A DNA stretch of 64,000 bases from Rebecca billardiae RCC1528 (GCA_965240325.2 OZ251233.1:310001-374000); one strand, 5' to 3'. Shown: positions 9,001 through 64,000, counted from the stretch's first letter. Translations and numbers: made by a program. Notes: generated by a model from the sequence alone, not told the origin.

Positions 9001-9682
9001 CGCGTGGCGCGAGGCGATTGGCGCGTCCTCGACGCCGATGCTCGCTCCGAGCCGCACTGCATGCCGCGCCGCCGCCACTCCTCACGGCCGCGCGCCCACA
9101 GGGCTGCGGCTCCGCGACCGAGCCGCAGGGCTGCGGCCGCAGGCCTGCGGCCGCAGCCCTGCGGAAGCAGGCTGATGCTGCTGTTCGGTTCAGTCGCGCG
9201 GCGCGAGGCGAGCGGGCGGGCGGGTGGCCGCGGTGCTGATTGGCGCGTCCTCGACGCCCATGCTTGCTCCGAGCCGCGCTGCATGACGCGCCGCCGCCGC
9301 TCCTCACGGCCGCGCGCCCGCAGGGCTGCGGCTTCGCGCCCGATCCGCAGCCCTGCGGCGCAGGCCTGCGGCCGCAGGCCTGCGGAAGCAGGCTGCTGCT
9401 GCTGCTCGGCTCAGTCGCGCGGCGCGAGGCGATTGGCGCGTCCTCGACGCCCATGCTCGCTCCGAGCCGCACTGCATGCCGCGCCGCCGCCACTCCTCAC
9501 GGCCGCGCGCCCACAGGGCTGCGGCTCTGCGACCGAGCCGCAGCCCTGCGGCGCAGGCCTGCGGCCGCAGGCCTGCGGAAGCAGGCTGCTGCTTCTGCTC
9601 GGCTCAGTCGCGTGGCGCGAGGCGAGCGGGCGGGCGGGTGGCCGCGGTGCTGATTGGCGCGTCCTCGACGCCCATGCTCGCC
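1..9682 (+). repeat. Satellite A: about 45 tandem units of ~199-225 bp, open at the window start
   Basis: Recurring core GATTGGCGCGTCCTCGACGCCCATGCTCGCTCCGAGCCGC...GCCACTCCTCACGGCCGCGCGCCCGCAGGGCTGCGG, then 2-3 copies of CCGCAG(CC/GC/GG)CTGCGG and a (GCT)n tract ending CTCGGCTCAG. Short and long unit variants alternate. Confidence 0.97.
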
Positions 9683-10310
9683 CAAAACTTCGGGCCCGAA
9701 ACTTCGGGCCGTCCGCTGTGACTGGCCTCGCTGCTGCTGCTGCTCGGCTGAGTGGGCAGCGACAGACTTGTGGGTTGGAGGTCGTCCTACATTGCCCACA
9801 CTCCCTGCCCGTGCTCGCCCCGCGCCGCTCTGCACGCCGCACAACATCGCCACTCCTCACGCCGGCGCACCCGCAGGCCCGAAGTTTCGGGCCCGAAACT
9901 TCGGGCCCGAAACTTCGGGCCGTCCGCTGTGACTGGCCTCGCTGCTGCTGCTGCTCGGCTGAGTGGGCAGCGGCAGACTTGTGGGTTGGAGGTCGTCCTA
10001 CGTTGCCCACTCTCCCTGCCCGTGCTCGCCCCGCGCCGCTCTGCATGCCGCACAACATCGCCACTCCTCACGCCGGCGCACCCGCAGGCCCGAAGTTTTG
10101 GGCCCGAAACTTCGGGCCCGAAACTTCGGGCCGTCCGCTGTGACTGGCCTCGCTGCTGCTGCTGCTCGGCTGAGTGGGCAGCGACAGACTTGTGGGTTGG
10201 AGGTCGTCCTACACTGCCCACTCTCCCTGCCCGTGCTCGTCCAGCGCCGCTCTGCACGATCGCTACTCCGCACGCCGGCGCACCCGCAGGCCCGCAGTTT
10301 CGGTCCCGAA
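9681..10310 (+). repeat. Satellite B (211-bp unit), about 3 units in forward orientation
   Basis: Unit contains CCCGAA(GT/AC)TTCGGG x3 then CCGTCCGCTGTGACTGGCCTCGCTGCTGCTGCTGCTCGGCTGAG; same orientation as satellite A. Confidence 0.95.
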
Positions 10311-39864: not shown

Positions 39865-40087
39865 ACCGGCGGCAGCGCGAGTGGCCCGCCCGCCCCCGCC
39901 GCGGCGCCCGCGTGCGCCCTCGCCAGCTTCCCGCGCACCCACTGGCCGAGCGGCGGGCCCACAAACAAGTCGAGGCCGAGGGCGTCCACGCCCACGTCCG
40001 CGGGCGCGGCCGGGTGGGGCGCGGACGGCGGCGCGGCGTGGGCAGGCGGCGGCGGCGCGGCGGCGCTCGGCTCGGCGACAGCCGAGC

Positions 40088-40122
<35 letters not shown>

Positions 40123-43100
40123 TGCGCCTCAGCCTGCTGCACGTACGCGCGCGCCTGCGCGACCAGCGCCCACACGGTGTGCGCGCCGCGCGCGTCCGCG
40201 CCGCCGCCGGCCTCGCTCTCGCCGCTGGCGTCCGCGGCCGCGCCCTCGTCCGCACCGCCCAGCGCCGCGCCGTCCGCGCCGCGCGGCTGCGCCGGCAGCT
40301 CCGCAGCCGCCGGCACGAGCGAGTCCCACGCCCACGCCGCCTCCCTGACGAACGCCAGCGCGGCCTCGAGCGCGGCGATGCGGCCGTGCGCCGTGTCCAA
40401 CTCCTGCCGCAGCCCAGCGTTCACGGCGGCGAGCGCGCGGCGCGGCGTGCTGCCCGCGCGCGCGTGCAGCGCGCTCGACGCCGCGGCGCGCCAGTCCCCG
40501 GCGCGCCACGCGGCCGCGCGAGAGCTCGCCACCGTGCCGGTCGTCGACAGCCGCGCGCCCGTCGCACGCGTCGTCGCGACCGAGAGCCGGCGCACGGGCC
40601 GGCCGGGCGCGGCGCCCGGCGCGCGCTCGCGGCCGCCGCCGCGGCCGCAGCCAGCCGGTGCCTCGTCGTCGTCGTCGTCGTCGTCGACGCCGCCGCCGAG
40701 CACCTCGGTGAGCACGGCGGCGACGGCCGCGGAGGGCCGGGCCGCCGCGGCAGCCGAGCCGCTCGCCGCCGGCGTCGCCGCCCACGCGGGCGCGAGCCAG
40801 CCCAGCGCCGCCGGGTGCGCGCGGCGGCGGCGCGCTGCGGCCGCGAGCGCGGCGCTCACGCGCGGCGCGGCGCGCTCAGCCATGAGCCGCGCGGCAATCA
40901 CCACCGCACTCTCCGCCTCCGACTCGGCGGCGGCGATCTCGACGGCGAGGGCGCACGCCTCTGCGTGGAGTCGGGTCACCGTCTCCGCGCGCGCGCCGCC
41001 CTCCGCCTCGAAGCCGCCCTCGCCAGCGCCCCCACCGAGGCCGCCCTCGGCGGCAGCAGCGGCGGCGGCGGCGCGCACCGCGCGCGCGCCGGCGGCCGCG
41101 CCGTCCGCGCCGCCGTCCGCGGCCGCGTCGGCCCCGCCCCACGGCGCGTCCGCGCCGCCGTGGCTGCTGCGCCGCGCCGCGCGCTCGGTCGCAGCGTCCG
41201 TGAGCGCAGAGTCGCCGTCGTCCGAGCAGCGGCCGCGCGCGCCGCCACCGGCCGCGGCGGCAGCGACCAGCTCGAGGCCGGCGCCGCCGTTGCGCGCGCT
41301 CGCGCCGCCGTGCGCCGCGGCCGAGCGCGCACAGCCGTTGCCGTGCGCTGCGCCGGCGGTGGCGTGCTGCTCGCTGCCGAACGAGCCGCCGGCCGCGCCG
41401 CCGTCCGCGTCGCCGCACGAGCTTCGCGAGCGCGAGCCGCCGTCGCCCTCGCTCCCGGCCCACGCCTCCGCCGCGCGCGCCGCCTCGAGCGCGGCCGCGT
41501 GCGCCTCGTCCGCGCCCGCCGCTGCCGCCCTCATCGCACGCTTCCAGCGCTCAAAGTCGGCCTGCAGAGCGCAGCACGCGCACGGGGGGCGGGGCGCGTG
41601 GGGCGCCGGGCGCGCGGCGTGTGTGCGCGCGCGGCCCGCCCGCGCGCGCGTGCGGCGCGGGCCCGGCGCTCGCGGGCGGCGGCGCGCGGCGGCGCGCGCG
41701 CTCGCACCTGCGAGTGCGCGCTGAGCTGGTGCACCTCCTCGCCGCCCGCGTGCGCGGCCCTGAGCTCCCAGGCCCACGCAGGCGCGCCGCTCAGCTTCGT
41801 CCCGCGCGGGTGCAGCGTCGCCTTCCGCACGCTGCCCAGCTGCAGGCAGCACAGCGGCGTGCGCGCCGTGTGTGCGCTGAACAGCAGCAGGCAACCACCG
41901 CTCGTGAGCGCCGCCCAGCGCGTGTGCGCGGCGCGCGCGGCGCGCGCGGCGGCGCCGACGCCGGCGGAAGGGGCGGCGGTCGCGGCGGCGGTGGCGAGCG
42001 CGCCGAGCGCCGCGCCGGACACGCAGCGGTGCTCCAGGTACCCCGACGTCACGAGCTGCTGCGAGCACACCGCCACGGGCTCGGCCAGCGCGGTGCCAGC
42101 GCACGCGGCGCGCAGCAGAGCGCACGTCTGTGCGCGCAGCCGCGCGCTCGGCGCGCGCAGGTAGAGCGGCGGCGCGTCGGGCGGCGCGAGGACGAAGGCG
42201 GTGTCGCCGCCGTCCGCGCGCCCCGCCCCGCCCCCGCCGGCGTCGAGCACGCCCGTCGCGCGCCTGTGGTGCGCCTCCGTCAGCGCCGCCACCGTCGTGC
42301 CGTCGCCGAGCGTCGCGGCGGCTCTGAACGCGCCGCCCGCCCAGAGCAGCGCCACGCCGGTGAGCGGCTCGATCTCGAGGACGAGATTCACGCCGTCGCA
42401 CAGCTGCGGCTTGGTCGCGCCCACCAGCGCGGGGGTGTGCGCGGCGCCGCGCGCGCGCGCGCGCGAGCCCGCCGCGCGCGAGCCGCGCGCCGCGCCGCCG
42501 TGCGCCGCGGCCGCGGCCGCGGCCGCCGCGCCGCCGCCGAGCAGCAAGCCGGCGCCGCCGCCGTGCGCGGCCACGCCTCCGGCGCCGGCGCCGGCGCCGG
42601 CGCCGCCGTAGCCGCCGCCGCCAAAGACGGGCAGGAAGCACAGCCCGCGCCGCAGCCTGAGCTCCAGCGGCGCGTCCGCCGCCGCGCGCGACGGCGCTGC
42701 GGCGATCTCCTTGGCAAGGCGCAGCAGCCGCCACTCCGCGTGCAGCGCGCTCTGCAGCAGCGCGCTGTGCTCCTGCCCCGCGGCCTTGAAGCTGCTGCTG
42801 TCGCCGAGGGCGAGGCCGCCCACGCCCACGCTCATGCCGCGGCCCGCTGCCGCCGCCGCCGCACCGGCCCCGCCGCCGCCCGCGCCGCCCGCGCCGGCGA
42901 GCGACGACGCGGACGTTTGCGGCGTGGGCGTGGGCGTGCGCGGAGGGGCCGCCCACGCGCACGGCCCGCCCCCGCCGCCCCCGCCGCCGCCCATGCCGCC
43001 GCAGAGCGAGCGCGCGTCGGCTGCTCGGCCCGGCTGCGCGCCGCGCGCGTGCCCGCCCGCGGCCACCGTGCCACGGCCACCGCCCGCCACGCTGCGCGCC

Positions 43101-43322
43101 ACGCCGACGGGCTGGGCCGCGGCAGTGGCGGCCGCCCCCGCGCCGCGCGCCGCCTCCGTCTGCGCGGACACGGCCGAGCTGCGACGCAGGGCGCGCGCAG
43201 CGTCGCGGAGCCGCGCGCCGATCACGCTGCGCGTGTCGTCCGCGTCGGCCGAGGCGGCGCGGCCGGCGTGCACGGGCAGCGAGCCGAGCGTGGACGAGCG
43301 CTCGAGCCCGCGCGCCGAGCCC

Positions 43323-43359
<37 letters not shown>

Positions 43360-44672
43360 GCAGCACGGCGCTCTCCCGCGCCTGCGCGCGCGCCAGCAGC
43401 ACTCGGAGGCGTACCTCGACGGAGCCCGAGGCTTCGATGGCGGCGAGCTCGGCGCAGAGGAGCCGCACGTGCGCGCGCGCGCGCGCGCGCTCGGCGGCGT
43501 GCGCGCGCGCCACGGATGCGGCCACGGCGCGCGCGGCGCTGCCGGCGCCGCGCTGTGAGCTGCCATCAGCATCTGCGTGCGCGCCGTGCGCGCCACTCGA
43601 CAGCGTGCGCGGCAGCTCGGGCGGTGCGCCCCAGAGCTGCCGGCCGCTGGCAATCGCCTCGCTGAACGCGGAGACCCACCGCTGCTTGTCCGCCTGCGCG
43701 CCGGCGCGCGGCGCGCCGGCGTGCGCCGGCGTACGCGCGGACGCGCGGCGCGAGTCAGCGGCGCGGCGCGGCGCGGCGCGGCGCGCGAGCACGCGGCGCG
43801 CGAGCGCGCGCGGAGGCACGAGCGCCGCGCGCGCGCACCATGCCGCGCGCGGCGAAGCGGTGGATCAGCGTGCCCCCGTCGGGCAGGCCTGCCTGCATGC
43901 CGTCCACCGCCGCCGCCGCCGCGCCGCCGCCGCCGCCGCCGTCGCCGTCGGGCGCGCCGCCCGAGCCGCGCCGCCGCGCCGCCGCCGCGCCCTTGGCGGG
44001 CGACTCGCCCTCGTCGGCGAGCAGCATGGTGGCGAAGGCGGCGGCGCTGCCGCCGTCCATGTCCGCGGGCACGCCGGCGGCGCAGCCCGCCTCCTCCGAC
44101 CCCGCCGCGCCCGCGCCCGCGCCGCCCGCCGCGCCGCCGGGCGCGGGCGGCACGTTGGGCGCGGCGTACGCGGGCGGTGGCGCGGCGCACAGCTCGAGGA
44201 CAAACGATTCGAGCTGGGGCTGGACGAGGCCGACGGCGTCGAGCCAGTGCACGTGCGCGGGGCAGCGCGCGGCCTTGTCGTGCGAGATGTACAGCCGGCC
44301 GCTCACCAGCACGAGCCACGCCTTGGACCAGATCAGCGAGCCCTCGAGCATCAGCTCGCCCGCGTGCCACACGCGCTCCGCGTGCGCGCTCAGCGGCTCG
44401 GCGGTGCACGCGGCGCGGATGAGCGCGCACGTGGCGGTGCAGTGGCGGTGCGTGTCCGCGTGCAGCACGAGCGGCTCGCGCCCGGCGAAGAGCACGCACA
44501 GCTGCGGGCGTGTGTGGCCGGCCGGCGCGTGCGATTCGCACGCGGTCACGACGTCCGCGAGGCTGTACTCGCGCCACGGGTGCTCGCGGCGCCAGAGGCG
44601 GAGGACGCCGGCGGGCGGGTCGATCTGCAGCAGCAGCGGCGCGTCGTCCTCGTCGAGTACGGGCAGGAACAT
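39642..44672 (-). CDS. Large multi-PH-domain protein; exons 44672-43839, 43693-41708 and 41561-39642
   Basis: PH-like segments (AGELMLEGSLIWSKAWLVLVSGRLYI...ADKQRWVSAF; SGYLEH...TRWAALTSGGCLLLF...ADFERWKRAM) are joined by GT-AG introns 43694-43838 and 41562-41707. The C-terminus is coiled-coil, poly-P and poly-Q. Confidence 0.72.
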
Positions 44673-49496: not shown

Positions 49497-52400
49497 ATGG
49501 CAGAGTCCGGAAGTACTTGTGCAGCACCCCCAGCGTGGTCGTCCCGGAATTGCCGCGACGGAGCATCATCTTCCGCTTCCGCTTCGTCCATGGCGTCGAG
49601 CGGAATGGATGCCAACGCGTCGCCGACGCGGCCATCGAGCGCGCGTATCGTGGACGTGATCAGGGAGCGCATGGCGGAGGGCCGGCCGTGGTTCTCGCTC
49701 GAGGTGCACGGCCGCCCCGCGCCGCGCCGCCGCGCCAGGGCCCCGCGAACGCCGCCACGGTCGACTCACGCGCGCGCGAGCCTCGCCCTCCGCCCCGCGC
49801 GGCGCACGCGCGCGCGCGCGCGCGCGCGCAGTTCTTCCCGCCGCGCACAGAGGCGGGCGTGGTCAACCTGCAGGAGCGGATCATGCGCATGGCCCAGCTC
49901 CAGCCCGCCTTCGTCGACATCACCTGGACGGCAGGCGGCAAGTCGCACGACCTCTCGATCGAGCTCGCGCGCTTCTGCCTCGAGCAGGGGCTCCCGGTGC
50001 GTGCGGCCTCGCGCGCGCGAACGCGCCGGCCGGCCGGGCGCGGGTGGTCGAAGGCGGCGGTGGCGCGCGTGGGAGCCTGGCTGGCCTCGGGGCGAGCTGT
50101 CGCGCGGCGCCAGCCCAGCGCTGCGCGCGCCAGGCTGCGCGGCACGTGCTGAGCGCCCACCGGCGCGCGCCGCGCACGCACCTCTGTCCCCGCAGGCTCA
50201 GATGCACCTCTCGGTGGCCGGGATGGACGAGGCGGCGGTGCGCGACGCGCTCGACGCCGCGCGCAAGGCGGGCATCGTCAACATCCTCGCGCTCCGTGGC
50301 GACGCCGCCGCCCAGCCCGGCGAGGACGCGCCGCGCGTGAGCGCGTTCGCCCACGCCGTCGACCTGGTCCGATTCATCCGCGCGCACTATGGCGATGCGT
50401 TCTGTGTCGGCGTGGCGGGTGCGCGCCGCGTGCGCGCGGCCGCGCGGGAGGGCTGGGCACAGCGCGCCGCCCCGCTGCGCGCGGCCGAGCGCGGCCGCGC
50501 GCGCCCACACCGCGCCGAGCCGCACGCCTCCTTCGCCTCCCCGCCCTCCTTGCCGTGCCTTTGGTGCGCGCGCGCCGTGCGTGTGCGTGTGCGTGTGCGT
50601 GTGCGTGTGCGTGTGCGTGTGCGTGTGCGTGTGCGTGTGCGTGTGCGTGTGCGTGTGCGCGTGCGCCGTGCGTGTGTGCGTGTGCGTGTGCGTGTGTGTG
50701 TGTGCAGGCTACCCGGAGGGGCACGCGGAGAGCCCTTCGTACGAGGAGGGCATGGCCCACCTCAAGGAGAAGGTGGACGCGGGCGGCGAGTACGTGATCA
50801 CGCAGCAGTTCTTCAACGTCGCGCGCTTCGAGGCCTTCCTCAAGGACTGCGCGGCCGCCGGTGCGGCGGCAGCGCGCGCGGCACGTGCGGCGGTGCCGCG
50901 CCCGCGGTGCCGGGCGCGCCCCGCTGCTGGCGGCGCGCGCGCTCACGGCTGCTGCGCCGCCGCCGCCGCCGCGCGCCGCCCCGGCAGGCATCAGCGTGCC
51001 CGTCATCCCGGGCGTGATGCCCATCCACAACTACGAGTCCTTCCGACGGATCGTGCGCTTCTGCCGCACGGATGTGCCGCCGCCCGTGATGCAGCGGCTC
51101 GGCCCAATCAAGAACGACGACGAGGCGGTCAAGGTGCGCAGCATGCGGCGCGCGCGCGCGGAGTTGCACGCGCGGAGCGCGCGCCGCTCGCTGCCGCGCG
51201 CTGGGACTCGCCGCACGCGGCAGCACGGCGCGGCCGGTGCACGCGGCGCCTGCGCCGCCTCGACCGCCCACCCACCGAGCTGCCGCCCCCGGCCCCACGC
51301 CTGCCGCCCGCCCGCGCAGGCGTACGGCACCGAGCTGGGCGTCTCGATGTGCCAGCAGCTGTTTGCGCACGGCGTGCGCGGCGTGCAGTTCTACACGCTC
51401 AACCTCGAGAAGTGCGTGACGGACATCCTCACCTCGCTCGGATTCGCGCGCGGGCCGGGTGCGCGGCGCGCGCGCGCCGCGGCGCCGCGCACGCGCCGTC
51501 GGCCGCGCCTGCCCCCGCGCGCGCTGAGGCGGCGCGCCCGCTCGGCCGCGCGCGCGCGCGCGCGCAGCCACGCGCGAGGTGCCGTGGCCGCTCGCGCGCA
51601 ACAGCTCAGGCAAGGGCGAGAGCGTGCGGCCGATCTTCTGGGCCAACAGGCCGCAGTCGTACGTGAGCCGCACCGCTCACTGGGACGAGTTTCCCAACGG
51701 CCGCTGGGGCGATCAGCGGTGTGCGCGCGCCGCCGCCCAGCCGCGCACGAGGCCCGCCCAGGAGGATGCCATCGCAAAGTACCATCAAATGCTGACGCAG
51801 CGCGACGCTGCATGCAGACACACCGCTTTTTGCTCGCTGACTGGCTGGCCACGCCCGCCGCGGCCGCGGCCGCGGCACGGCGCGCGCAGCCAGCCCGCGC
51901 CGGCCGCGCGCACCACGCTCACGGCCGCTGCCCCGCGCCGCCCCCGGTGCCGGCGGCGCCGCGCGGCGCGCGCGCGCGCCGGTGCACAGCTCGCCCGCGT
52001 TCGGCGACCTCACCTCGTACCACATGGCCAAGCTGCACGCCGTCAAGTCCTCCGAGCGCCGCGCGGCGTGGGGCCACGAGCTCAGCTCGGTCGACGACGT
52101 GTGCGCGACGTTTGTGCGGTGCGCGCGGCCGTGCGGCCGCGGCCGCGGCCGCGATCGAGCCGCGCGCGCGCCCGTCGCCTGCGCCAACGCCGACCGAGCG
52201 GTGCGCGGCGCCCCCGTGCTCGCGCGCCCCGCCCTCCCGCAGCTACGTGCGCGGGCAGATCCCGATGCTGCCGTGGTGCGAGCTCGCCCTCGCCACCGAG
52301 TCGGAGCGCATCGTCGACGGTCTGGTGCAGCTGAACGCGTGCGGCATGCTCACCATCAACTCGCAGCCCGCGGTCGACGGCGCGCGCTCAGACGACCCCG

Positions 52401-53069
52401 AAGTGGGCTGGGGAGGGCCCGGCGGGTGCGCGCGCGCGCGCGCGTGCGCGCAGGGCGGGGCGTGTCGGCCGTGTCGGAGCGGGGGGCTGCTCGGCCCACG
52501 CGGCGCGCGCACACCGCGCACGCCGCGCTGCGCCGCGCCGTGCCGCCCGCGCGCCGCCCCGCCTCGTCGTCCGACTCGCGCGCCGCCCCGCCGCGCCGCC
52601 CACCCGCCCGGCCCGCGCGCGCAGCTACGTGTACCAGAAGGCCTACATCGAGATGTTCGTCTCGGCGCAGACGCTCGCGGCGCTGCAGGCGGCGATGCCG
52701 CGGTACCCGACGCTGAGCTACCAGGCCCTCAACATGGCGGGCGAGCTGAAGCACAACCTCGCGCCCGACGCGGAGGGCGACGTGTCGGGCTGCGTGTGCG
52801 CCGTCACGTGGGGCGTGTTCCCTGGGCGCGAGGTGGTGCAGCCGACGGTGGTGGACCCGGTCGCGTTCCGCTCGTGGAAGGAGGAGGCGTTCGACCTGTG
52901 GCTCTCGCAGTGGGGCTCGCTGTACGAGCACGGCTCGAGGTCGTACGAGGTGATCCGCGCCATCCACGACAGCTACTACCTGCTGTGCGTGGTGGACAAC
53001 GAGTACAAGGGCGGCGACATCCTCGCCATCTTCAGAGAGGTGGCGGGCTCGAGCATCTCCGCGGAGTGA
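49497..53069 (+). CDS. MTHFR: Eukaryotic methylenetetrahydrofolate reductase, 10 exons: 49497-49703, 49832-49996, 50196-50418, 50708-50860, 50988-51133, 51320-51458, 51568-51718, 51990-52118, 52243-52425, 52625-53069
   Basis: FSLEFFPPRT, NILALRGD, GVAGYPEGH, LKEKVDAG..YVITQ, FYTLN, VRPIFWANRP, WDEFPNGRWGD, TINSQP, GWGGPGGYVYQKAY, AVTWGVFPGREVVQPTVVD. All nine introns are GT-AG and preserve frame. The start could alternatively be 49590. Confidence 0.96.
50577..50705 (+). repeat. (GTGCGT)n microsatellite in MTHFR intron 3, running up to the acceptor
   Basis: Alternating purine-pyrimidine hexamer tract ending in TGCAG at 50707. Confidence 0.92.
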
Positions 53070-53659
53070 GCCGCGCGCGCAGCAGCAGCCACGGGCACGG
53101 GCATCTGCTCTGCGCGCGTGCGGCCGGGTCACATGCCGCGCGTGCTCGGTGACGCTGCGAGGTCCTGCTACTGGCGGGTGTGCTGCGAGTGCGGCGGCAC
53201 TCGTTCAGTCGTTGCGCGGGCTGAGAGTCGCCGCTGCTCGGCACTGGCAGCACGGCGGGCCTCAGTGCGGTGCTGTCCGCGTCGACTCGAAGTCGTCGTC
53301 TTAGCCTTAGCAGCGCAGCTAGCAGACGATCGATCGACAGTGACGACAGCGCGCAGCAGCGCGCATTATTGCTGATGATGCTGCTGCTGACGATATTGTT
53401 ATTGACGCCTAATTGTAACGGGTCGTGGCGGACTACGCGACGACGATGGAAACAATATGTATCATCAATAATACATTTATTTATTCAATACTATCATACT
53501 GATGTAGCAGATGCGATATGACGATGATGACCAGGGTGATGAATGGCGTGATCAGTACACGCGCGGCACTGATACGCGACAACATGATGATGATGATGAT
53601 GGGCGCGCCTGCATCGGAGCTCGGCGCCGATCCGCCGTACTCAGAGTACTGCACACGGG

Positions 53660-56600
53660 CTAGAAGCGGAACTGGTGCCGCACCTCAGCCTCCTCGGGCG
53701 GCACGCAGTCCTTGGGGCACAGGTTGAAGTGGCCGAAGAGCAGCCGGTGAGACTTGTGGCGCCGGCCGGACGGGCGCGCCGCCGTCTTCTCCGTGCCGCG
53801 CTGGACGCAGCCCGGCGGGCACAGGTTCTCGGGCGGGCACTCCGGCAGGCGCGCCGGCTCGAGGACAGCGCCAGGGGGCAGCGGGCTCGTCCCGCAGATC
53901 TTGGACCCAGTCACGTTCCTGCGCCACGCGCGCGGGCACGTACGGGGAGATGGACGCAGATGGCGGGTCAGCGCGAGCGTGTGGCGCGGTGCGCACCGTC
54001 GTGAGGCGCGTGCGGTCGCACGCAACAAGCGCGCGCGCGCACATGAGACGGAGGGAGGTGAGCTGGCCGAGCGAGTTCGGCAGCGAGCCGCGCATCAGGG
54101 TGGAGGACATGTCGATGCGCGTGACGTTGACGAGCCTGCCCAGCTGCGCGGGCACGGTGGAGGTGAGGTCCAGCTCAGAGAGGTCGAGGCGGCGCAGCTC
54201 GGTGAGCAGCCCGATCTCGGACGGCACACGCCCGACCAGCCGGTTGCGCGAGAGGTCGAGGTCCGTGATCGTGCGCAGGTTGCCGATCTCCGCGGGGATG
54301 GAGTCGCTGAAGAGGTTGCCGGCAAGGTTGAGCGTGTTCCACTGCATGCTGTCGAGCACGATCCAATTGTCGTGCGCGTCGCCACCGCCGCGGCCCCGGG
54401 TTGCACCAGTCTTGGACCTCCCTGGCTTGTGCAGGTGCCCGCTGAGCGCGTTGTCGTTCAGGATCAGCGTGAGCGCCCGCCGCGGGCCGAGGCTGCTCGG
54501 CAGCCCGCCGGTGAGATGGTTGTTCGAGAAGTCGTAGTACGTCACGTCGAAGAACGAGTCGACGTGGAACTGCCCCACGATCGAGTTGTTCGAGGCGTCG
54601 AGGTGGCGCAGCGTTGTGATGGGCCCGATGTGCGTAGGGATCGAGCCGCACATCTGGTTGTGCGCCACGTTGAGGTGGCGGAGGGTGCAGAGGTCGTCGG
54701 GCGGCGGCGGCGGGAACTTGGTGTGGAACTCGCCGCTGATCTTGTTGCGCGAGTAGTCGCCGTAGTCGATGTCGAAGAAGGAGTCCACCTGGAAGGAGTT
54801 GCCCGGCACGCTCAGGCGAGTGAGCGTCGTGATCTGCGCGAGCTCGGTCGGCAGCAGGCCGTGGAAAGAGTTGTCGCCCAGCTCGAGGGTAGTCAGCCCG
54901 TGGGTGATAGAACCGAGCTCGGTCGGCAGCACGCCCGTGAAAGAGTTGCCCGAGATGTCGAAGTACGAGACGTCGAAGAACGAGTCGATGTTGAAGTTGC
55001 CACGGATCGAGTTGTTGGCGATGTCGAGGTGGCGCAGCGTCGTGATCGGGCCGATGTCCGTCGGGATCGTGCCGCCCAGCTGGTTGTTTGCCGCGCGCAG
55101 AGTTCTGTAGCGGCACTCGCCGCCCGGCGCGGGCGGCGGCCACTTGTCCTGGAACGCTCCGCGGAGCCGGTTGCGCGAGTAGTCGCCGTAGTCGATGTCG
55201 AAGAAGGAGTCGACGTTGAACGAGTTGCCCGGCACGCTCAGGTGAGTGAGCGTAGTGATCTGCGCGAGCTCGGTCGGCAGCAGGCCGTGGAAAGAGTTGT
55301 CGCCCAGCGAGAGGTGGGCCAGCGACGTGCGGAACCCGATGGTCGACGGGATGGAGCCTTTCATCGAGTTGGAGCTCAGGTCCACGTGGGCCAGGCGGCG
55401 GCCGATACGCGCGCCGGCGCCCACCTCTGTCCATCGGCCGACGTTGCCCGTCAGGCGGTTGCCCGAGCCGTCAAAGTACTCGATGTCGAAGAACGAGTCG
55501 ATGTTGAACCCGCCACCGATCGAGTTGTTGGCGATGTCGAGGTGGCGCAGCGTCGTGATCGGGCCGATGCGCGTCGGGATCGTGCCGACCAGGCCGTTGT
55601 TCGCCACACGCAGACTTCTGTAGCGGCACTCGCCGGTGTCCGGAGGCGGCGGCCACTTGTTCTGGAACGCACCGGTGATCTGGTTGCGCGAGTAGTCGCC
55701 GTAGTCGATGTCGAAGAAGGAGTCGACGTTGAACGAGTTGCCCGGCACGCTCAGGTGCGTGAGCGTGGTGATCTGCGCCAGCTCGGTCGGCAGCAGGCCC
55801 CGGAGCGAGTTGTCGCCCAGCGAGAGGTAAACGATGTTGGTGGTGACGCCGAGCTCGGTCGCCAGCGTGCCGGTGAGCGAGTTGCCCGAGCCGTCAAAGT
55901 AGGAGATGTCGAAGAACGAGTCGATGCGGAAGTTGCCGCTGATCGAGTTGTTGGCAATGTCCAGGTGGCGCAGCGTCGTGATCGGCCCAATGTCCGTCGG
56001 GATCGTGCCGCCCAGCTGGTTGTTCGCCACACGCAGAGTTCTGTAGCGGCAATCGTCGGTCCCAGGCGGCGGCCACTTCCTGTGGAACGCACCGGTGATC
56101 TTGTTGCGCGAGTAGTCGCTGTAGTCGATGTCGAAGAAGGAGTCGACGTTGAACGAGTTGCCCGGCACGCTCAGGTGTGTGAGCGTGGTGATCTGCGCGA
56201 GCTCGGTCGGCAGCAGGCCCCGGAGCGAGTTGTCGCCCAGCGAGAGGTAAACGATGTTGGTGGTGACGCCGAGCTCGGTCGGCACCGTGCCGGTGAGCGA
56301 GTTGCCCGAGCCGTCAAAGTACGAGACGTCGAAGAACGAGTCGATGTTGAAGCTGCCACCGATCGAGTTGTTGGCGATGTCGAGATGGCGCAGCGTCGTG
56401 ACCGGCCCGACGCGCGTCGGGATCGTGCCGCCCAGCTGGTTGTTCGCCACGTTGAGCCAGCCGATGACACAATTGTCGTCAGGGTCGGGCGGCGGCCACA
56501 TTGCGTGGAAGTCACCGGTGATCTTGTTGCGCGAGTAGTCGCCGTAGTCGATGTCGAAGAAGGAGTCGACGTTGAACGAGTTGCCCGGCACGCTCAGGTG

Positions 56601-59600
56601 CGTGAGCGTGGTGATCTGCGCCAGCTCGGTCGGCAGCAGGCCCCGGAGCGAGTTGTCGCCCAGCGAGAGGTGAACGATGTTGGTGGTGACGCCGAGCTCG
56701 GTCGCCAGCGTGCCGGTGAGCGAGTTGCCCGAGCCGTCAAAGTAAGAGACGTCGAAGAACGAGTCGATGCGGAAGTTGCCGCTGATCGAGTTGTTGGCAA
56801 TGTCCAGGTGGCGCAGCGTCGTGATCGGCCCAATGTCCGTCGGGATCGTGCCGCCCAGCTGGTTGCCCGCCACGTTGAGCCATGCGATGACACAATTGTC
56901 GTCAGGGTCGGGCGGCGGGAACTTGTTCTTGAACTCTCCGGTGATCTTGTTGCGCGAGTAGTCGCCGTAGTCGATGTCGAAGAAGGAGTCGACGTTGAAC
57001 GAGTTGCCCGGCACGCTGAGGTGCGTGAGCGTCGTGATCTGCGCCAGCTCGGTCGGCAGCAGGCCCCGGAGCGAGTTGTCGCCCAGCGAGAGGTAAACGA
57101 TGTTGGTGGTGACGCCGAGCTCGGTTGGCACCGTGCCGGTGAGCGAGTTGCCCGAGCCGTCAAAGTACGAGATGTCGAAGAACGAGTCGATGCGGAAGTT
57201 GCCGCTGATCGAGTTGTTGGCGATGTCGAGGTGGCGCAGCGTCCCGATCGGCCCGATGTCCGTCGGGATCGTGCCGCTCATCTCGTTGTTCGCCGCGCGC
57301 AGAGTTCTGTAGCGGCACTCAACGCCGGCCGGCCCCGGCGGCGGCCACTTGTTCTGGAACTCTCCGGTGATCTTGTTGCGCGAGTAGTCGCCGTAGTCGA
57401 TGTCGAAGAAGGAGTCGACGTTGAACGAGTTGCCCGGCACGCTGAGGTGCGTGAGCGTGGTGATCTGCGCCAGCTCGGTCGGCAGCAGGCCCCGAAGCGA
57501 GTTGTCGCCCAGCGAGAGGTGCTCAATGTTGGTGGTGGCGCCGAGCTCGGACGCCAGCGTGCCGTGGAACGAGTTGGAGCTCAGGTCCAGATGCGCACCG
57601 GCGAAGCCAAGCGTCACGGTGGCGACATCCCCACCCAGGCGGTTGCGACTCAAGTTCAGCGTGCGGAGGGCCTTCAACGGGAGCAAGGAGTCCGGAATCG
57701 TACCTGCGAGGGGGCAGGGGCACTGCTGAGATGTGGCACGCGTGTGCAGCATTGGCAGCCATCGCATCGCGCGCATGCGCACCGAAGATCTGGTTGTCTG
57801 AGAGATCGAGCGAGCTAAGGGACCTGAGCTTCCCGAGCTCGGGCGCGATGGTGCACGTGAGCGAGTTGGACGAGACGTCGAGCATCGAGAGACGCTGGAG
57901 CCGGTCGACGGTCGACGGCACCTCCCCGACCAGGCTGTTGCCGGCCAGGCTGAGTGAGACGAGATCAGTCGCGAGGCCGAGCTCGGTCGGGATGGTGCTC
58001 GTCAGCTTGTTGCCGCCCAAGCTCAGGCTGCGCATGGCCGAGTTGGCCAAAACCCTCGTCGGGATCGCACCTGTCAGGGCGCGGGCGTCCGCGCACGTGC
58101 ATGAGCTAGGGCCCTCCCTCTCGACGCACGCAATGGTCGCGCACGCACGCACCGACGAGCTGGTTGTCCGAGATATCGAGCGTGGCAAGGGACTGGAGCG
58201 TCCCGAACCCGACCGGGAGGGTGCACGAGAGCGAGTTGGACGAGAGGTCGAGCGACTCCAGCCGCTTGAGGACGGTGACGTGCGTGGGGATCTCGCCCAC
58301 CAGCCGGTTGCCCGACAGGTCCATCGACAGCATCTCCGTCTCCCACCGACCGACCTCGGACGGGATCGAGCCACTCAGGCTGTTGTCGCTGAGGTCGAGC
58401 TCGGCAAGCGTGGTGATCCCACCGAGCTCGGTGGGGATGGGTCCAGACAGCCTGTTGAGGTTCGCCCCCATCACAGTGATGGTGGCTGAGATGCCGAGCT
58501 CGGTCGGGATCGAGCCGGTGAGGCTGTTGTCGCCGACGGAGAGGGTGCCGAGCGTGGTGATGCTGCTGAGCTCAGTCGGCATGATGCCGGTGAGCGAGTT
58601 GGACGAGACGTCGAGCGTCTGCAGCCGCTTGAGGACGGTGACGTGCGTGGGGATCGAGCCCACCAGCCGGTTGCCCGACAGGTCCATCGACAGCATCTCC
58701 GTCTCGAGCCGACCGATCTCGCTCGGGATCGAGCCACTCAGGCTGTTGCCGCTGAGGTCGAGCTTGGCGAGTGTGGTGATCTCGCCCGTCTCCGTCGGGA
58801 TGATGCCGTCGCAGTCGTTGTCATGAACGTCGAGCGTCACCAGGGTGGTGATCAAGCCGATCTGGGACGGGATCGTGCCAATGAGCGAGTTCGACGAGAC
58901 GTCGAGCGTCTGCAGCCGCTTGAGGACGGTGACGTGCGTGGGGATCGAGCCCACCAGCCGGTTGCCCGACAGGTCCATCGACAGCATCTCCGTCTCGAGC
59001 CGACCGATCTCGCTCGGGATCGAGCCACTCAGGCTGTTGCCGCTGAGGTCGAGCTTGGCGAGCGTGGTGATCTCGCCCGTCTCCGTCGGGATGATGCCGT
59101 CGCAGTCGTTGTCATGAGTGTCGAGCATCACCAGGGTGGTGATCAAGCCAATCTCCGTCGGGATCGTGCTCGTGAGCGAGTTGGACGACAGGTTGAGCCT
59201 CTGCAGCCGCTTGAGGACGGTGACGTGCGTGGGGATCGAGCCCACCAGCCGGTTGCCCGACAGGTCCATCGACAGCATCTCCGTCTCCCACCGACCGACC
59301 TCGGACGGGATCGAGCCACTCAGGCTGTTGTCGCTGAGGTCGAGCTCGGCGAGCGTGGTGATCTCGCCCGTCTCCGTCGGGATGATGCCGTCGCAGTCGT
59401 TGTCATGAACGTCGAGCGTCACCAGTGTGGTGATCAAGCCGAGCTCAGTCGGGATCGTGCTCGTGAGCGAGTTGGACGAGAGATCGAGCGTCGACAGCCG
59501 CTTGAGGACGGTGATGTGCGTGGGGATCGAGCCCACCAGCCGGTTGCGAGGCAAGCTGAGCGTCTGGAGCGAGTTGGCGCGCGCGATCTCGGTCGGCACA

Positions 59601-59931
59601 ATTCCGGTGAGTGAGTTGTCGCCCAGCTGGATCGTGACGAGGCCGATGAACTCACCGATCTCCGTCGGGATCGGTCCCGTCAGCTGGCGGTTCTCCAGCA
59701 CCCTGCATGCCGCAGGGCGGCCAGCGCGTGAGCGAGCGCGCGGGCCACGCACTGCACAGCGGCTCGTGGGCGCGCGCCGCGCATTCTTTGGCGCGCGTGC
59801 GCGTGGCGCGCGGCGTACATGTCGACGCAGTTGTTCGGCGACCGGAGGCAATCTTGCCACAGCTCCGTCTCATCGAGCCTGAGCGCGCGCGCCGAGGCGA
59901 CGACGAGCGCCGCGACGACAAGCGCGCGCAT
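53660..59931 (-). CDS. Giant secreted leucine-rich-repeat protein (~1,956 aa); exons 59931-59819, 59702-58153, 58070-57783, 57703-54043 and 53918-53660
   Basis: Signal peptide MRALVVAALVVASARA, Cys-containing N-cap, dozens of plant-type LxxLDLSxNxLxGxIPxE repeats and a Cys-rich C-cap. Four GT-AG introns join the ORF-track fragments in frame (5,871 nt). No transmembrane or kinase domain seen. Confidence 0.9.
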
Positions 59932-61475: not shown

Positions 61476-62402
61476 TCACTGGCATCGGCCGCGCGGTCCG
61501 CGCCCGCGCGACAATTGCTGGGCAGACTTGCCTAGTAGGAAAGCGACGACGAGGGCACGCACGAAGGCCGCGTCAGCCGGCGTGTACGCCTCGAACGACG
61601 CGGCCGCCGCCGCGAGCCCATCCGCATCGAGCGAGCCACTCTCGCGCAGGCTCGGCTCGATGCGCTCTCGCATCACGGCCGGCCAGAACTCAGGGTGGAA
61701 CTGCATGCAGAGCACGCGCTCGCCGAGGGCGTAGGCCTCACACGGGCACTTGGATGAGGACGCGAGCGCCTCGGCGCCGGGCGGCAGCTCGAGCACGCAC
61801 TGGCCGTGGGACTCGAGCACGCGCGGCGTGTCGGGCAGGGCGGCGCTGCCACTCGCCTGCCGTGTGCACTCGCGCGCGCGGCGCACCGCTGGGTGCGCGT
61901 GCCAACCGGGCGTGCACCGCAGCTGCTCGACGCCGAATGCGAAGGGCGCGGGGGCTGGGTTGGGCCCCACGCGCCCACCGAGCGCGTGCGCAACGATCTG
62001 ATGCCCAAAGCACACGCCGACGACGCGCACGCGCTCGTGCCGCGTGGCTGCGCGGATGCATGCACTGAGCCGCTGCATCCACGGCGTCGACGGCTCGTCC
62101 GTCACCATGCGGGCAGATCCCGAGATGATAATCCCGTCATACGCCTCCGGAGCTGGCAGCTCACCAAGCCACGCGCGGTACTCGTGCCACTCCACTGCTT
62201 GTCCACTCGGCGGCGCGAACGCGCGCCGAAAGATCTCCGGGAGGTCGTGCCACTTCTCAGAGTCTGCCACGTTGACGATTGCCCAGCGCAGCGGCGTGGG
62301 CGCGAGCCGGAGTCGCCGAGCGGCGCGGGCGGCCCGTGCGATCACGGCGAGTGACACGAGGAGCCCGCCGCCGAGCACGAGCAAGCCGACGCCGTCGCGC
62401 AT
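61476..62402 (-). CDS. Class I glutamine amidotransferase-like protein (GMP-synthase-like / gamma-glutamyl peptidase type) with an N-terminal membrane anchor
   Basis: YDGIIISGS, nucleophile elbow GVCFGHQ, ALGGRV, ESHGQCV..LP and QFHPEF give an intact Cys-His-Glu triad. The start ATG at 62402 precedes a hydrophobic helix. Confidence 0.9.
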   Translation of the reverse strand: MRDGVGLLVLGGGLLVSLAVIARAARAARRLRLAPTPLRWAIVNVADSEKWHDLPEIFRRAFAPPSGQAVEWHEYRAWLGELPAPEAYDGIIISGSARMVTDEPSTPWMQRLSACIRAATRHERVRVVGVCFGHQIVAHALGGRVGPNPAPAPFAFGVEQLRCTPGWHAHPAVRRARECTRQASGSAALPDTPRVLESHGQCVLELPPGAEALASSSKCPCEAYALGERVLCMQFHPEFWPAVMRERIEPSLRESGSLDADGLAAAAASFEAYTPADAAFVRALVVAFLLGKSAQQLSRGRGPRGRCQ

Positions 62403-62519
62403 GCTGATCGCTCGTTGTGACGACGGGCGCAGTCCAGACCGCCACCGGGGCCGCTGCGAGGCGGGCACGCGTCGCGCTCCCACCGGCGAGCGGGCTGCGG
62501 GTCGGCTTCGGCGAGCGCC

Positions 62520-64000
62520 ATGGCCGCCGCGCTCGTCAGCGTCATCGTCGTGTTGCATGCTGGCGAGCCGGCGTCGCGCGCGTCCCAGCTGGCGCTCGGT
62601 CGCTGCGACGCCCGACTCGCAGCCCAGCCCATCCTCGCGCGCCCAGCCCGGCGCCGCCGCCTCCTCGCGATGCGCGGCGGGGGAGACGGCGAACCAGCTG
62701 CCGACGCGCGCGGCGGCGCGAGGCGGGAGCCGCAGCCCGCCGCCGAGCCGGTCTCCCAGGCCGACGAGGCCATACTCGTGCTCAGGTGCATGCGGATGTG
62801 GCAGCCCAGCCTGGCCTTCACCGCGCTGTGCTGGGCGCTCTACCTCGCGCCCGGCTGGGCGCGCGCGCGGCTGCCACTTTTCGCTCAGGCGCGCGGGTTT
62901 GGCGCGGCGCGCGCGCTCGGCGCGTGCGCGCCGCGCGCGCAGCAAGGAGAGCCGGCGCTCGTGCCGTCGTCCTTGCACGCCGCCTTTCGCGCCGGTCGGC
63001 TCGCCGAGCGCGCGCGTGCCGCGACGCCGGCACAGCGGGCTGACTTCACCATGCAGCTGCGCGCTCTCTGCCCCAGCGCGCACCCGCTCGCGCGGGGCAG
63101 GGCGAAAGCCGAGGGCGGCGCGCTCTGCATCCGGGCGGAGTCGCAGGACCTGGGCGGCGGTGCCGCCGAGACGGGCGCGCCGTTTGCGGATTTCGACGCG
63201 CTCGAGGAGCGGCTGGCCGCGCTCGACGCGCGCGGCGCGGCGCTGGCGCGCGTGCGCGGCGCGTGCACGGCCGAGCGCGCGCGCGTGTTTGTGGGCGCGC
63301 TGGGCGGCAGCGTGGGGCTGGTGCTGCTGCTGCGCGCCGCGCGCGCGCACGCGCCGCCGGGGCTGCGCGCGCTCGGTCGGCGGGCCGCGGGCTGGATCGC
63401 GCCCGCCGCCTCCGCGCTCCATCGCGTCGGCGTGCTCGAGCTCAGCCTGTGGCTGCTCAGCGCCGCCCTGCTCGCAGATGCCCTGCTGTTTGCGCCGACC
63501 GGCCGGGCGGCCGCGGCGCTCGTGCTGCTCGGCGCGGGGCTGGCGCTTGGCCCCGCGCGCGAGCTGTCGCGCGCGCTGTGGGAGCCGCTGCCGAGCTCGG
63601 GCGGCACGGGCGGCGGCGGCGGCGGCGCGGCGCTGGGCATGCGCCGCGCCGACGCGCTCGGCCTCGCGTGGCGCGCGCTCTCCCTCGCGCCCCTCGCGCT
63701 CGCGCTGCGCTCCGCGCCGCTCGCGCTCGCCGCGCTCGGCTGCGCGTACGCGGCGCTCGGCGTGTGTCCGGTGGCGTCCGCGCTCGTGCGCCGCCTGGGC
63801 GCGGGCGGGGCGGAGGAGGCGGCGGCACGTGCGGCGGTGGCGTCGCTTGGCTTCATCGCCGCCGAGCTGGGCGTGCGCGCGGCGTGCGCGCGCCAGCGCA
63901 CGCCCGCGCGGCGCGGCGTGCGCGCGGCGCGCCTCTTTGCCACGCCCAGCTCGGCCCTGGGCGCCGGCGGGCTGCACGCGGCGACCATCTTCCTCAGCTC
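62520..64000 (+). CDS. Putative polytopic membrane protein, 3'-truncated by the window end
   Basis: Manual translation from ATG 62520 (MAAALVSVIVVLHAGE...LLAMRGG...) is open to 64000 with several Leu/Ala-rich helices. It is absent from the ORF track because no stop is reached. Confidence 0.6.
   Translation, partial: MAAALVSVIVVLHAGEPASRASQLALGRCDARLAAQPILARPARRRRLLAMRGGGDGEPAADARGGARREPQPAAEPVSQADEAILVLRCMRMWQPSLAFTALCWALYLAPGWARARLPLFAQARGFGAARALGACAPRAQQGEPALVPSSLHAAFRAGRLAERARAATPAQRADFTMQLRALCPSAHPLARGRAKAEGGALCIRAESQDLGGGAAETGAPFADFDALEERLAALDARGAALARVRGACTAERARVFVGALGGSVGLVLLLRAARAHAPPGLRALGRRAAGWIAPAASALHRVGVLELSLWLLSAALLADALLFAPTGRAAAALVLLGAGLALGPARELSRALWEPLPSSGGTGGGGGGAALGMRRADALGLAWRALSLAPLALALRSAPLALAALGCAYAALGVCPVASALVRRLGAGGAEEAAARAAVASLGFIAAELGVRAACARQRTPARRGVRAARLFATPSSALGAGGLHAATIFLS

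Follow-up and report, generated by a model that had tools for sequence, protein, structure and literature searches.

A hairpin-like segment resembling part of a bacterial barrel domain, tandemly amplified within a leucine-rich repeat gene of Rebecca billardiae RCC1528

The stretch analyzed here, 64,000 nucleotides of the alga Rebecca billardiae RCC1528 (GCA_965240325.2, OZ251233.1:310001-374000; hereafter the window, with coordinates counted from its first letter), carries on its minus strand a gene for a leucine-rich repeat (LRR) protein at 53660..59931. Its repeat array contains a short, hairpin-like segment that resembles a strand-turn-strand part of a bacterial and archaeal domain with the signature F.VDSFFD..Y, and the origin of this resemblance is the subject of this analysis. 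Three long minus-strand open reading frames (ORFs), at 58109-59860, 57526-58374 and 53688-57782, all encode plant-type LRRs. The gene model comprises 5 predicted exons (59819-59931, 58153-59702, 57783-58070, 54043-57703 and 53660-53918) with 1,956 codons. The four predicted introns, of 116, 82, 79 and 124 nt, have GT-AG junctions that were read in the sequence, and their removal gives, in the spliced model, a single open frame with continuous LRR register. The usual donors are GTGCG or GTACG. Introns 2 and 3 (58071-58152 and 57704-57782) are both phase 1 and interrupt the Gly codon of NxLxGxIP; the gene may come from an ancestor built of one-LRR-per-exon cassettes, most of whose introns have since been lost. 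A read-length DNA unitig of run X1, which is represented by four unitigs here, carries an insertion of 2 bases (GC) following 59769, within intron 1. The coding sequence has a GC content of 65%, and 93% at third codon positions (GC3).

The gene is intact and would encode a secreted protein of about 1,956 residues consisting almost entirely of plant-type 24-residue LRRs, splicing and secretion being predicted. Read by eye, the N-terminus, MRALVVAALVVASARA, is signal-peptide-like and is followed by a two-Cys cap, and the C-terminus is a Cys-rich tail without a hydrophobic membrane segment. The body consists of about 75-78 LRRs in unbroken register. A length of exactly 24 residues, with the pattern LxxLxxLxLxxNxLxGxIPxxLGx, was found in 40 of about 76 segments, the remainder being in-register variants of 17-31 residues; this repeat length and continuous register place the protein in the plant-specific (PS) LRR class. 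Membership in the LRR family is also seen with Pfam, in which LRR_1 (PF00560) was matched at E = 3.6e-49 and 4.1e-56 (154.5 and 175.2 bits, cut-off 20.6) and LRR_8 (PF13855) at 131.6 and 121.2 bits (cut-off 27). No other Pfam family exceeded its threshold in the protein, DUF6073 and Hcp remained without a match even at E <= 10 on isolated segments, and NCBIfam returned LRR effectors only. The protein is most likely an extracellular LRR binding scaffold.

An earlier reading of the DNA, made without database searches (the sequence-only reading), had described an intron-containing gene whose canonical LRR segments are replaced by stereotyped peptides in LRR register. Both descriptions agree with the model above, and all counts were reproduced exactly on the minus-strand ORFs: F[NRQH][VI]DSFFD[IV].Y occurs 14 times, [WL]ETEMLSMDLSG (the TEM block) four times, DNDCDG three times, [KM][WF]PPP seven times, CRYR[TS]LR four times and RWTEVGAGARIG once. 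Since all stereotyped peptides belong to super-repeat units, each arose once and was later copied, and the counts are copy numbers (14 = 2 x 7, 7 = 1 x 7, 3-4 = 1 x 3.4). Tandem Repeats Finder (TRF) reported a 291-bp unit in 3.4 copies with 93% matches and a 423-bp unit in 5.0 + 1.9 copies with 82-89% matches. The multiplicity of the motifs is therefore ordinary tandem duplication, without independent recurrence, and most of the length of the protein grew through duplication of these two super-repeats.

The first super-repeat, the A-type array (58571..59547, minus strand, as are all features of the gene), is built of 291-bp units of 97 residues and four LRRs (24+24+24+25 residues), each with one DNDCDG and one ETEMLSMDLSG. 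The first DNDCDG hexamer (59387..59404) occupies the LRR position xNxLxG of LDVHDNDCDGIIP, and the other two are at 59096-59113 and 58805-58822. The first TEM block (59255..59290) lies in a 25-residue LRR and runs into MDLSGN; two more are at 58964-58999 and 58673-58708, and the fourth, at 58310-58345, belongs to a further, partial A-type copy. A THVTVLK heptapeptide is found 19 residues downstream of each TEM block.

The second super-repeat, the C-type array (54468..57518), comprises seven units of 140-142 residues with six LRRs each (24+18+29/30+24+22+24 residues). Every unit contains two copies of F.[VI]DSFFD[IV].Y, one [KM][WF]PPP and one CRYR or CVI variant, and the seven units are 76-93% identical in DNA over 141 codons. 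Each unit in turn consists of two 3-LRR half-units from an older duplication (global alignment z = 12 vs shuffles). In the first half-unit, the hairpin-like segment is 23 residues long, TTLT[HR]LSVPGNSF[NQ]VDSFFDIDY, and is formed by the tail of LRR1 and a short, 18-residue LRR2. The first of these segments is at 57393..57461; for the remaining six, the 11-mers lie at 56967-56999, 56544-56576, 56121-56153, 55701-55733, 55188-55220 and 54762-54794, and the full segment extends another 36 nt in the 5' direction of the minus strand. In the second half-unit, the copy F[RNH][IV]DSFFD[IV].Y directly follows a canonical LxLxxNxIxG in the 22-residue LRR5, the first at 57165..57197 and the others at 56742-56774, 56319-56351, 55899-55931, 55476-55508, 54963-54995 and 54537-54569. 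C-unit 5 has two extra LRRs (55314-55475), to which RWTEVGAGARIG belongs; they are similar to other LRRs of the same gene but have a variable part 6 residues longer.

To characterize the bacterial counterpart of the hairpin, GTDB was scanned, one genome per species, for DNA able to encode F-x-[VI]-D-[S]-F-F-D-[VI]-x-Y. This degenerate pattern amounts to about 38 bits, for which about 4 chance matches were expected by our own estimate in 596 Gb on two strands. At least 120 loci with at least 172 matches were obtained, and Ser was encoded at the degenerate codon in 167 of the 172 matches listed. About 160 of the matches listed share one context, ...DPDF..L.V..G...GLPSPGHTTLT.LP.GDF.VDSFFDITY.I.F.G.PGS.L.G..G.TT.T.R..., and their hosts include Phycisphaerae and other Planctomycetota, Chloroflexota, Acidobacteriota, Zixibacteria, Krumholzibacteriota, Fibrobacteraceae, Bacteroidota, Verrucomicrobia and Thermoplasmatota, among others. 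The domain covers about 190 residues, often in 2-4 tandem copies among the matches listed. By Pfam, parts of the bacterial proteins are DUF7901 (PF25470), and one protein, at locus L106, carries DUF6073 (PF19550) six times. One DUF6073 unit contains TEMV.L.L.G and, about 50 residues later, ADSFFD[IV]F. The sequence-only reading had named both the occurrence of IDSFFD[IV] in a bacterial domain and its pairing with TEM..L.L.G in DUF6073 proteins, and both statements held, nearly all GTDB loci listed representing one conserved domain. The same result means that DSFFD and TEM, which had been counted among several unrelated prokaryote-type motifs, belong to a single domain family.

Alignment of 51 domains gave invariant columns that include T124, L126, F136, D139, S140, F141, F142, D143 and Y146. 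An AlphaFold2 (AF2) model of the bacterial domain, with a predicted local distance difference test score (pLDDT) of 94.6, shows eight long antiparallel strands, in which GHTTLT.L forms the strand 121-128 and F.VDSFFD..Y.I.F the strand 136-152. Foldseek found no relative of the domain in the PDB, and with VIA-align the nearest folds were small eight-stranded barrels at Z 8-10 (PagL 10.0, NspA 8.8, OmpW and avidins). Its ESM Atlas neighbors were all bacterial, some with DUF6073 or DUF6004. NCBIfam holds no named family for it, and a literature search turned up no relevant mention of DUF6073, DUF7901 or the motif strings. The analysis also draws attention to this prokaryotic surface-protein domain, which is large and whose F.VDSFFD..Y strand is unusually invariant. 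Proteins with this domain (e.g., L033:32-4000:-, L074:4873-5445:+ and L106:21-8000:-) appear secreted, sometimes with a PEP-CTERM anchor, their Pfam coverage being partial. In addition, some small bacterial proteins (loci L024, L050, L073, L075 and L091) reiterate the F.VDSFFD..Y strand 2-3 times at a spacing of 20-28 residues, near the LRR period, and these often also have an SNIGSSG.DG block and a C-terminal GHVT[VL]L[KR].

The algal 23-residue segment aligns without gaps to bacterial TTLTRLGPPGS.F.VDSFFD..Y with 17-19 identities in 23 (74-83%). The best pair, algal TTLTRLSVPGNSFQVDSFFDIDY and TTLTRLGPPGSSFQVDSFFDITY of locus L054, agrees at 19/23, and several Phycisphaerae copies at 17-18/23. 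In the prokaryotic domain, the matched residues cover strand 6, the turn that follows and the first part of strand 7. With our own hidden Markov model (HMM) of the domain, of 206 positions, 14 matches were found in the algal protein and none elsewhere in the window. The seven first-half copies match positions 123-143 at about 20.5 bits each, and the seven second-half copies positions 129/130-143, at most to 174, at 13-17 bits. The signature block G.TTLT.L-turn-F.VDSFFD[IV].Y is therefore present in seven copies at 17-19/23, and seven more have the 11-mer only, while no full-length DUF7901 or DUF6073 domain was detected by Pfam at E <= 1-10. The fixed motif residues are invariant in all 14 algal copies. 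Half-units are 39-47% identical overall and 7-9 of 11 motif residues are identical between them. Among units, the flank shows 44 synonymous and 6 non-synonymous differences, and this pN/pS of 0.05, together with the invariant motif residues, indicates purifying selection. An AF2 run on two algal C-units with a four-row alignment gave a pLDDT of 32.

Since the 11-mer itself had served to find the bacterial set, the 12 upstream residues were also scored alone. With a flank-only position-specific scoring matrix (PSSM), the algal copies reached 17.2-21.0 bits. The comparison set came from searches of 5.8 billion proteins (word-indexed) and an exhaustive phmmer search over 1.84 billion representatives, which returned generic LRR proteins only, at 24-40% identity, from bacteria, plants, diatoms and metagenomes; 386 retrieved LRR homologues (607,007 residues) were scanned for motifs. 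In their LRR-register windows, 1 of 9,869 reached 17.2 bits and none reached 21.0. F.VDSFFD, the strict TEM block, H[VT]T.L[KRT], [KM][WF]PPP and CRYR were found in none of the 386 relatives. The motifs are therefore not a feature of a known LRR subfamily; had they been one, the sequence-only reading would by its own terms have been refuted.

These data bear on a first rival explanation, convergence or chance, in which the odd peptides would have arisen in situ as variants of the variable LRR segments, within a tandem array that evolves fast. An LRR and a barrel both need a beta-strand, a tight turn of G, P, N or S and an alternating hydrophobic strand, and copying would have made one accident look patterned. 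Every motif is in LRR register and the multiplicity is purely tandem, as expected from this explanation; TTL..L occurs 21 times in the gene and 93 times in the LRR relatives; no DNA-level trace of a transfer was seen; and the approximately 250,000 windows scanned would offer many chances for coincidence. The TEM block scores no better than the LRR null with the HMM, and DNDCDG differs by one residue from the DNDLDG of ordinary LRRs, as described below. On the other side, nine fixed residues and a 12-residue flank match without gaps, the flank score is nearly absent from the LRR-register windows, and DSFF was found just once in the relatives, as a chance DSFFD in an unrelated N-terminal cap. 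In addition, the protein may also hold TEM, another block of this bacterial family. Convergence is considered rather unlikely, and yet it is a serious rival, since the match is short, is partly dictated by strand-turn-strand needs and came out of a very large scan. If the resemblance is convergent, the case reduces to an ordinary irregular, tandemly amplified algal LRR protein.

The favored reading, regarded as an even call, is a single ancient chimeric event in which a hairpin piece of a barrel gene would have replaced the convex half of an LRR and would then have been kept and amplified. A short piece coding for the hairpin of a DUF7901/DUF6073-type domain would have entered an LRR unit in one ancient event, perhaps at the TTL..L tail common to most LRRs of the gene. 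The piece would have taken the place of the convex-side half of one repeat, giving the repeat of 18 or 22 residues whose shortness is offset by the 29/30-residue neighbor, and selection would have kept the hairpin while the half-unit was duplicated and the whole was then amplified seven-fold. Placed at every third coil, the hairpin segments would act as a structural or surface element and not as a diversity engine.

Several observations weigh against a chimeric event. The similarity spans only 21-23 of the 206 HMM positions, and the bacterial set was fished with a pattern derived from the alga, so that the independent evidence consists of the flank and the family-wide conservation only. Within the flank, L..L, the turn and the hydrophobic residue are required by an LRR in any case. 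At the DNA level, the 69 nt are 71-78% identical, and of the 19 codons for identical residues in the best pair, 11 also agree at the third position, an agreement that fits two GC-rich codon usages, so no recent transfer is visible; DNA-level identity to bacterial donors had been proposed earlier as a check. The six frames of the window contained neither a complete barrel domain nor a further copy of the motif; no LRR-barrel fusion or LRR array was found among the 120 bacterial loci listed, and no related hybrid gene in the protein searches or the metagenome scan. The metagenome scan, for DSFFD[IV].Y.D.S.N, gave two loci, neither of which had D[ST]FFD on translation, and a scan of viral contigs gave two unrelated DTFFD phage proteins and nothing relevant.

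For the other peptides, the bacterial link is looser. The TEM block GRWETEMLSMDLSG and GEWQTEMISMSLSG of the DUF6073 protein at L106 are identical at 10 of 14 positions. With a family HMM built without the TEM pattern, the four algal copies scored -0.9 to 1.8 bits, the maximum among the LRR relatives being 1.6, and most of the block (M..M.LSGN) is an LRR requirement anyway. Kinship of the TEM block with DUF6073 is suggestive only. The downstream THVTVLK resembles the GH[VT]T.L[KT] block of the bacterial family, a likeness that was spotted post hoc. The best TEM match (L106, contig JASFUW010000038.1) and one of the top hairpin matches (L074, 17/23, contig JASFUW010000075.1) come from the same Phycisphaerae metagenome-assembled genome (MAG), isolate D1105M12metaG_Bin_242.

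DNDCDG had been taken for the core of the MopE-like repeat PF11617. This family gave 21.5 bits summed over the three copies, below the 27-bit cut-off, and DND[LIVFM]DG is found in LRR register in four unrelated LRR proteins among the 386 relatives. A single residue separates DNDCDG from DNDLDG, a variant seen in register in ordinary LRRs. The 'Hcp-like insert' is a Gly/Arg-rich loop of 35 residues within one LRR (54333..54437); nothing bacterial matched it, and Pfam returned no family, Hcp included, at E <= 10 for the window segment 54300-54480. The loop was also considered as an unspliced intron, since an in-frame 69-nt GT..AG stretch would leave a 22-residue LRR, but its donor GTCCAA is atypical for the gene and the candidate was set aside. 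For WPPP, CRYR and RWTEVGAGARIG, as for the loop, no supported bacterial counterpart was found. In all, the bacterial link that had been proposed for these peptides stands for DSFFD, is suggestive for TEM and is unsupported for DNDCDG, WPPP, CRYR, RWTEVGAGARIG and the 'Hcp-like' loop.

The sequence-only reading had gone further and proposed an active system, either homology-guided grafting of short foreign patches or selection for several bacterial decoy epitopes, as a way to diversify the scaffold. Two blocks of one bacterial surface-protein family do lie in register in two different super-repeats, and the best matches to both come from one MAG (L074 and L106), of a class, the Phycisphaerae, that is often associated with algae. 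On the other hand, at most 1-3 origin events are needed, all predating the tandem duplications, and the copies are conserved at the motifs, which are their least variable parts, instead of being diversified there. Donor cassettes or extra copies were not found in the six frames of the 64 kb, no similar gene was found elsewhere in the searches, and 5 of the 7 peptides listed as foreign have no bacterial counterpart or one below threshold. The marks of a diversity-generating or short-patch capture system, namely donor cassettes, many independent patches and variation within the patches, were not seen in the window. Active grafting or decoy selection finds little support and is the most improbable of the explanations weighed. 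The hairpin-like segment within the LRRs is a real oddity, with no sign of a system that repeatedly captures foreign pieces; what had been read as grafting comes down to ancient events, 1-3 at most, whose products were later duplicated in tandem.

A related idea, judged very improbable, is that the secreted LRR scaffold displays the best-conserved strands of a Planctomycete-type surface-protein barrel (14 hairpins of strands 6-7 and four TEM blocks) as functional mimics. These would serve as a decoy, or else form a strand-complementation trap binding or disrupting the tandem barrel arrays that alga-associated bacteria carry on their surface. If true, it would represent a new type of host-microbe interface made of captured sub-domain fragments.

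Another explanation is bacterial ancestry of the whole gene. The alga would have acquired a giant surface-protein gene with LRRs, DSFFD/DUF6073 barrels and MopE-like repeats, deletions and unequal crossing-over would have dissolved the non-LRR domains down to their best-conserved strands, and the introns would have come later. Among the closest LRR matches are many multi-domain proteins of bacteria and metagenomes, whose 27-34% identity is similar to that of the plant matches, and giant bacterial proteins that join LRRs with D.DCDG repeats (P0123) or DSFFD barrels with D.DCDG (L008) do exist. The barrel order is also kept, TEM preceding H[VT]T.L in the A unit and TTLT.L preceding DSFFD in the C unit. 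Against it, none of the 120 motif-bearing bacterial loci listed has an LRR array, the LRR part is at most 40% identical to any bacterial protein found, and the codon use (GC3) and the introns are host-like. The neighboring gene is also eukaryotic in type: at 50861-53152 (plus strand) lies an MTHFR gene split by introns, with MTHFR and the S-adenosylmethionine (SAM)-binding regulatory domain MTHFR_C (Pfam, E = 1.7e-39). Since this neighbor is of eukaryote type and has the SAM-binding regulatory domain, the locus is algal nuclear DNA. Whole-gene bacterial ancestry has little support and is considered improbable. A bacterial contaminant or a misassembly was rejected in view of the introns, the GC3 of 93%, the 14 embedded copies and the eukaryote-type MTHFR neighbor.

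Compared with known systems, the protein is closest in plan to PS-class LRR ectodomains (PGIP, LRR receptor-like proteins and kinases), with which it shares the 24-residue consensus, the two-Cys N-cap, the Cys-rich C-cap and, by eye, a signal-peptide-like N-terminus. It differs from them in the apparent lack of a membrane part and the lack of a kinase part, in its about 75-78 repeats and in relatives that are at best 24-40% identical; moreover, one third of the repeats of the C-array are 18 or 22 residues long with a non-LRR convex half. Irregular LRR proteins with 'island' insertions are known, such as the island domain of BRI1 and PSKR, the loop-outs of receptor-like proteins (RLPs) and the Z-loop of TLR7-9. 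They likewise have non-consensus segments in a regular solenoid, and the algal 35-residue loop is such a case, whereas the hairpin segment is a short in-register replacement that recurs 14 times, once per three repeats, and nearly equals a conserved block of an unrelated bacterial domain. With the bacterial DSFFD barrel (DUF7901, DUF6073, DUF6004), the protein shares TTLT.L-turn-F.VDSFFD[IV].Y and may weakly share the TEM..L.L.G strand, but it has 21-23 of about 206 positions and an LRR solenoid in place of an eight-stranded barrel. Tandem one-LRR-per-exon genes of brown algae also grew by tandem duplication, and the phase 1 introns 2 and 3 in the Gly codon recall them; the gene described here has four introns only, its duplicated unit consists of 4 or 6 intronless LRRs, and its odd segments are conserved, not varied.

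Sub-domain fragments reused across folds ('themes', or an ancient peptide vocabulary) are known as ancient, statistical cases. There too, a hairpin-sized segment is common to two unrelated folds, whereas the algal case would be lineage-specific, of high identity and amplified in one gene. If the hairpin truly descends from a bacterial barrel gene, it would provide a clean natural case of a sub-domain fragment that crossed both folds and domains of life. Such a fragment, kept under selection and amplified in a repeat protein, would bear on the origin of new repeat types and on protein-fragment reuse.

As for the composition of the window as a whole, blocks of 77-84% GC (1-10000, 40001-44000 and 62001-64000) alternate with stretches of 61-70%.

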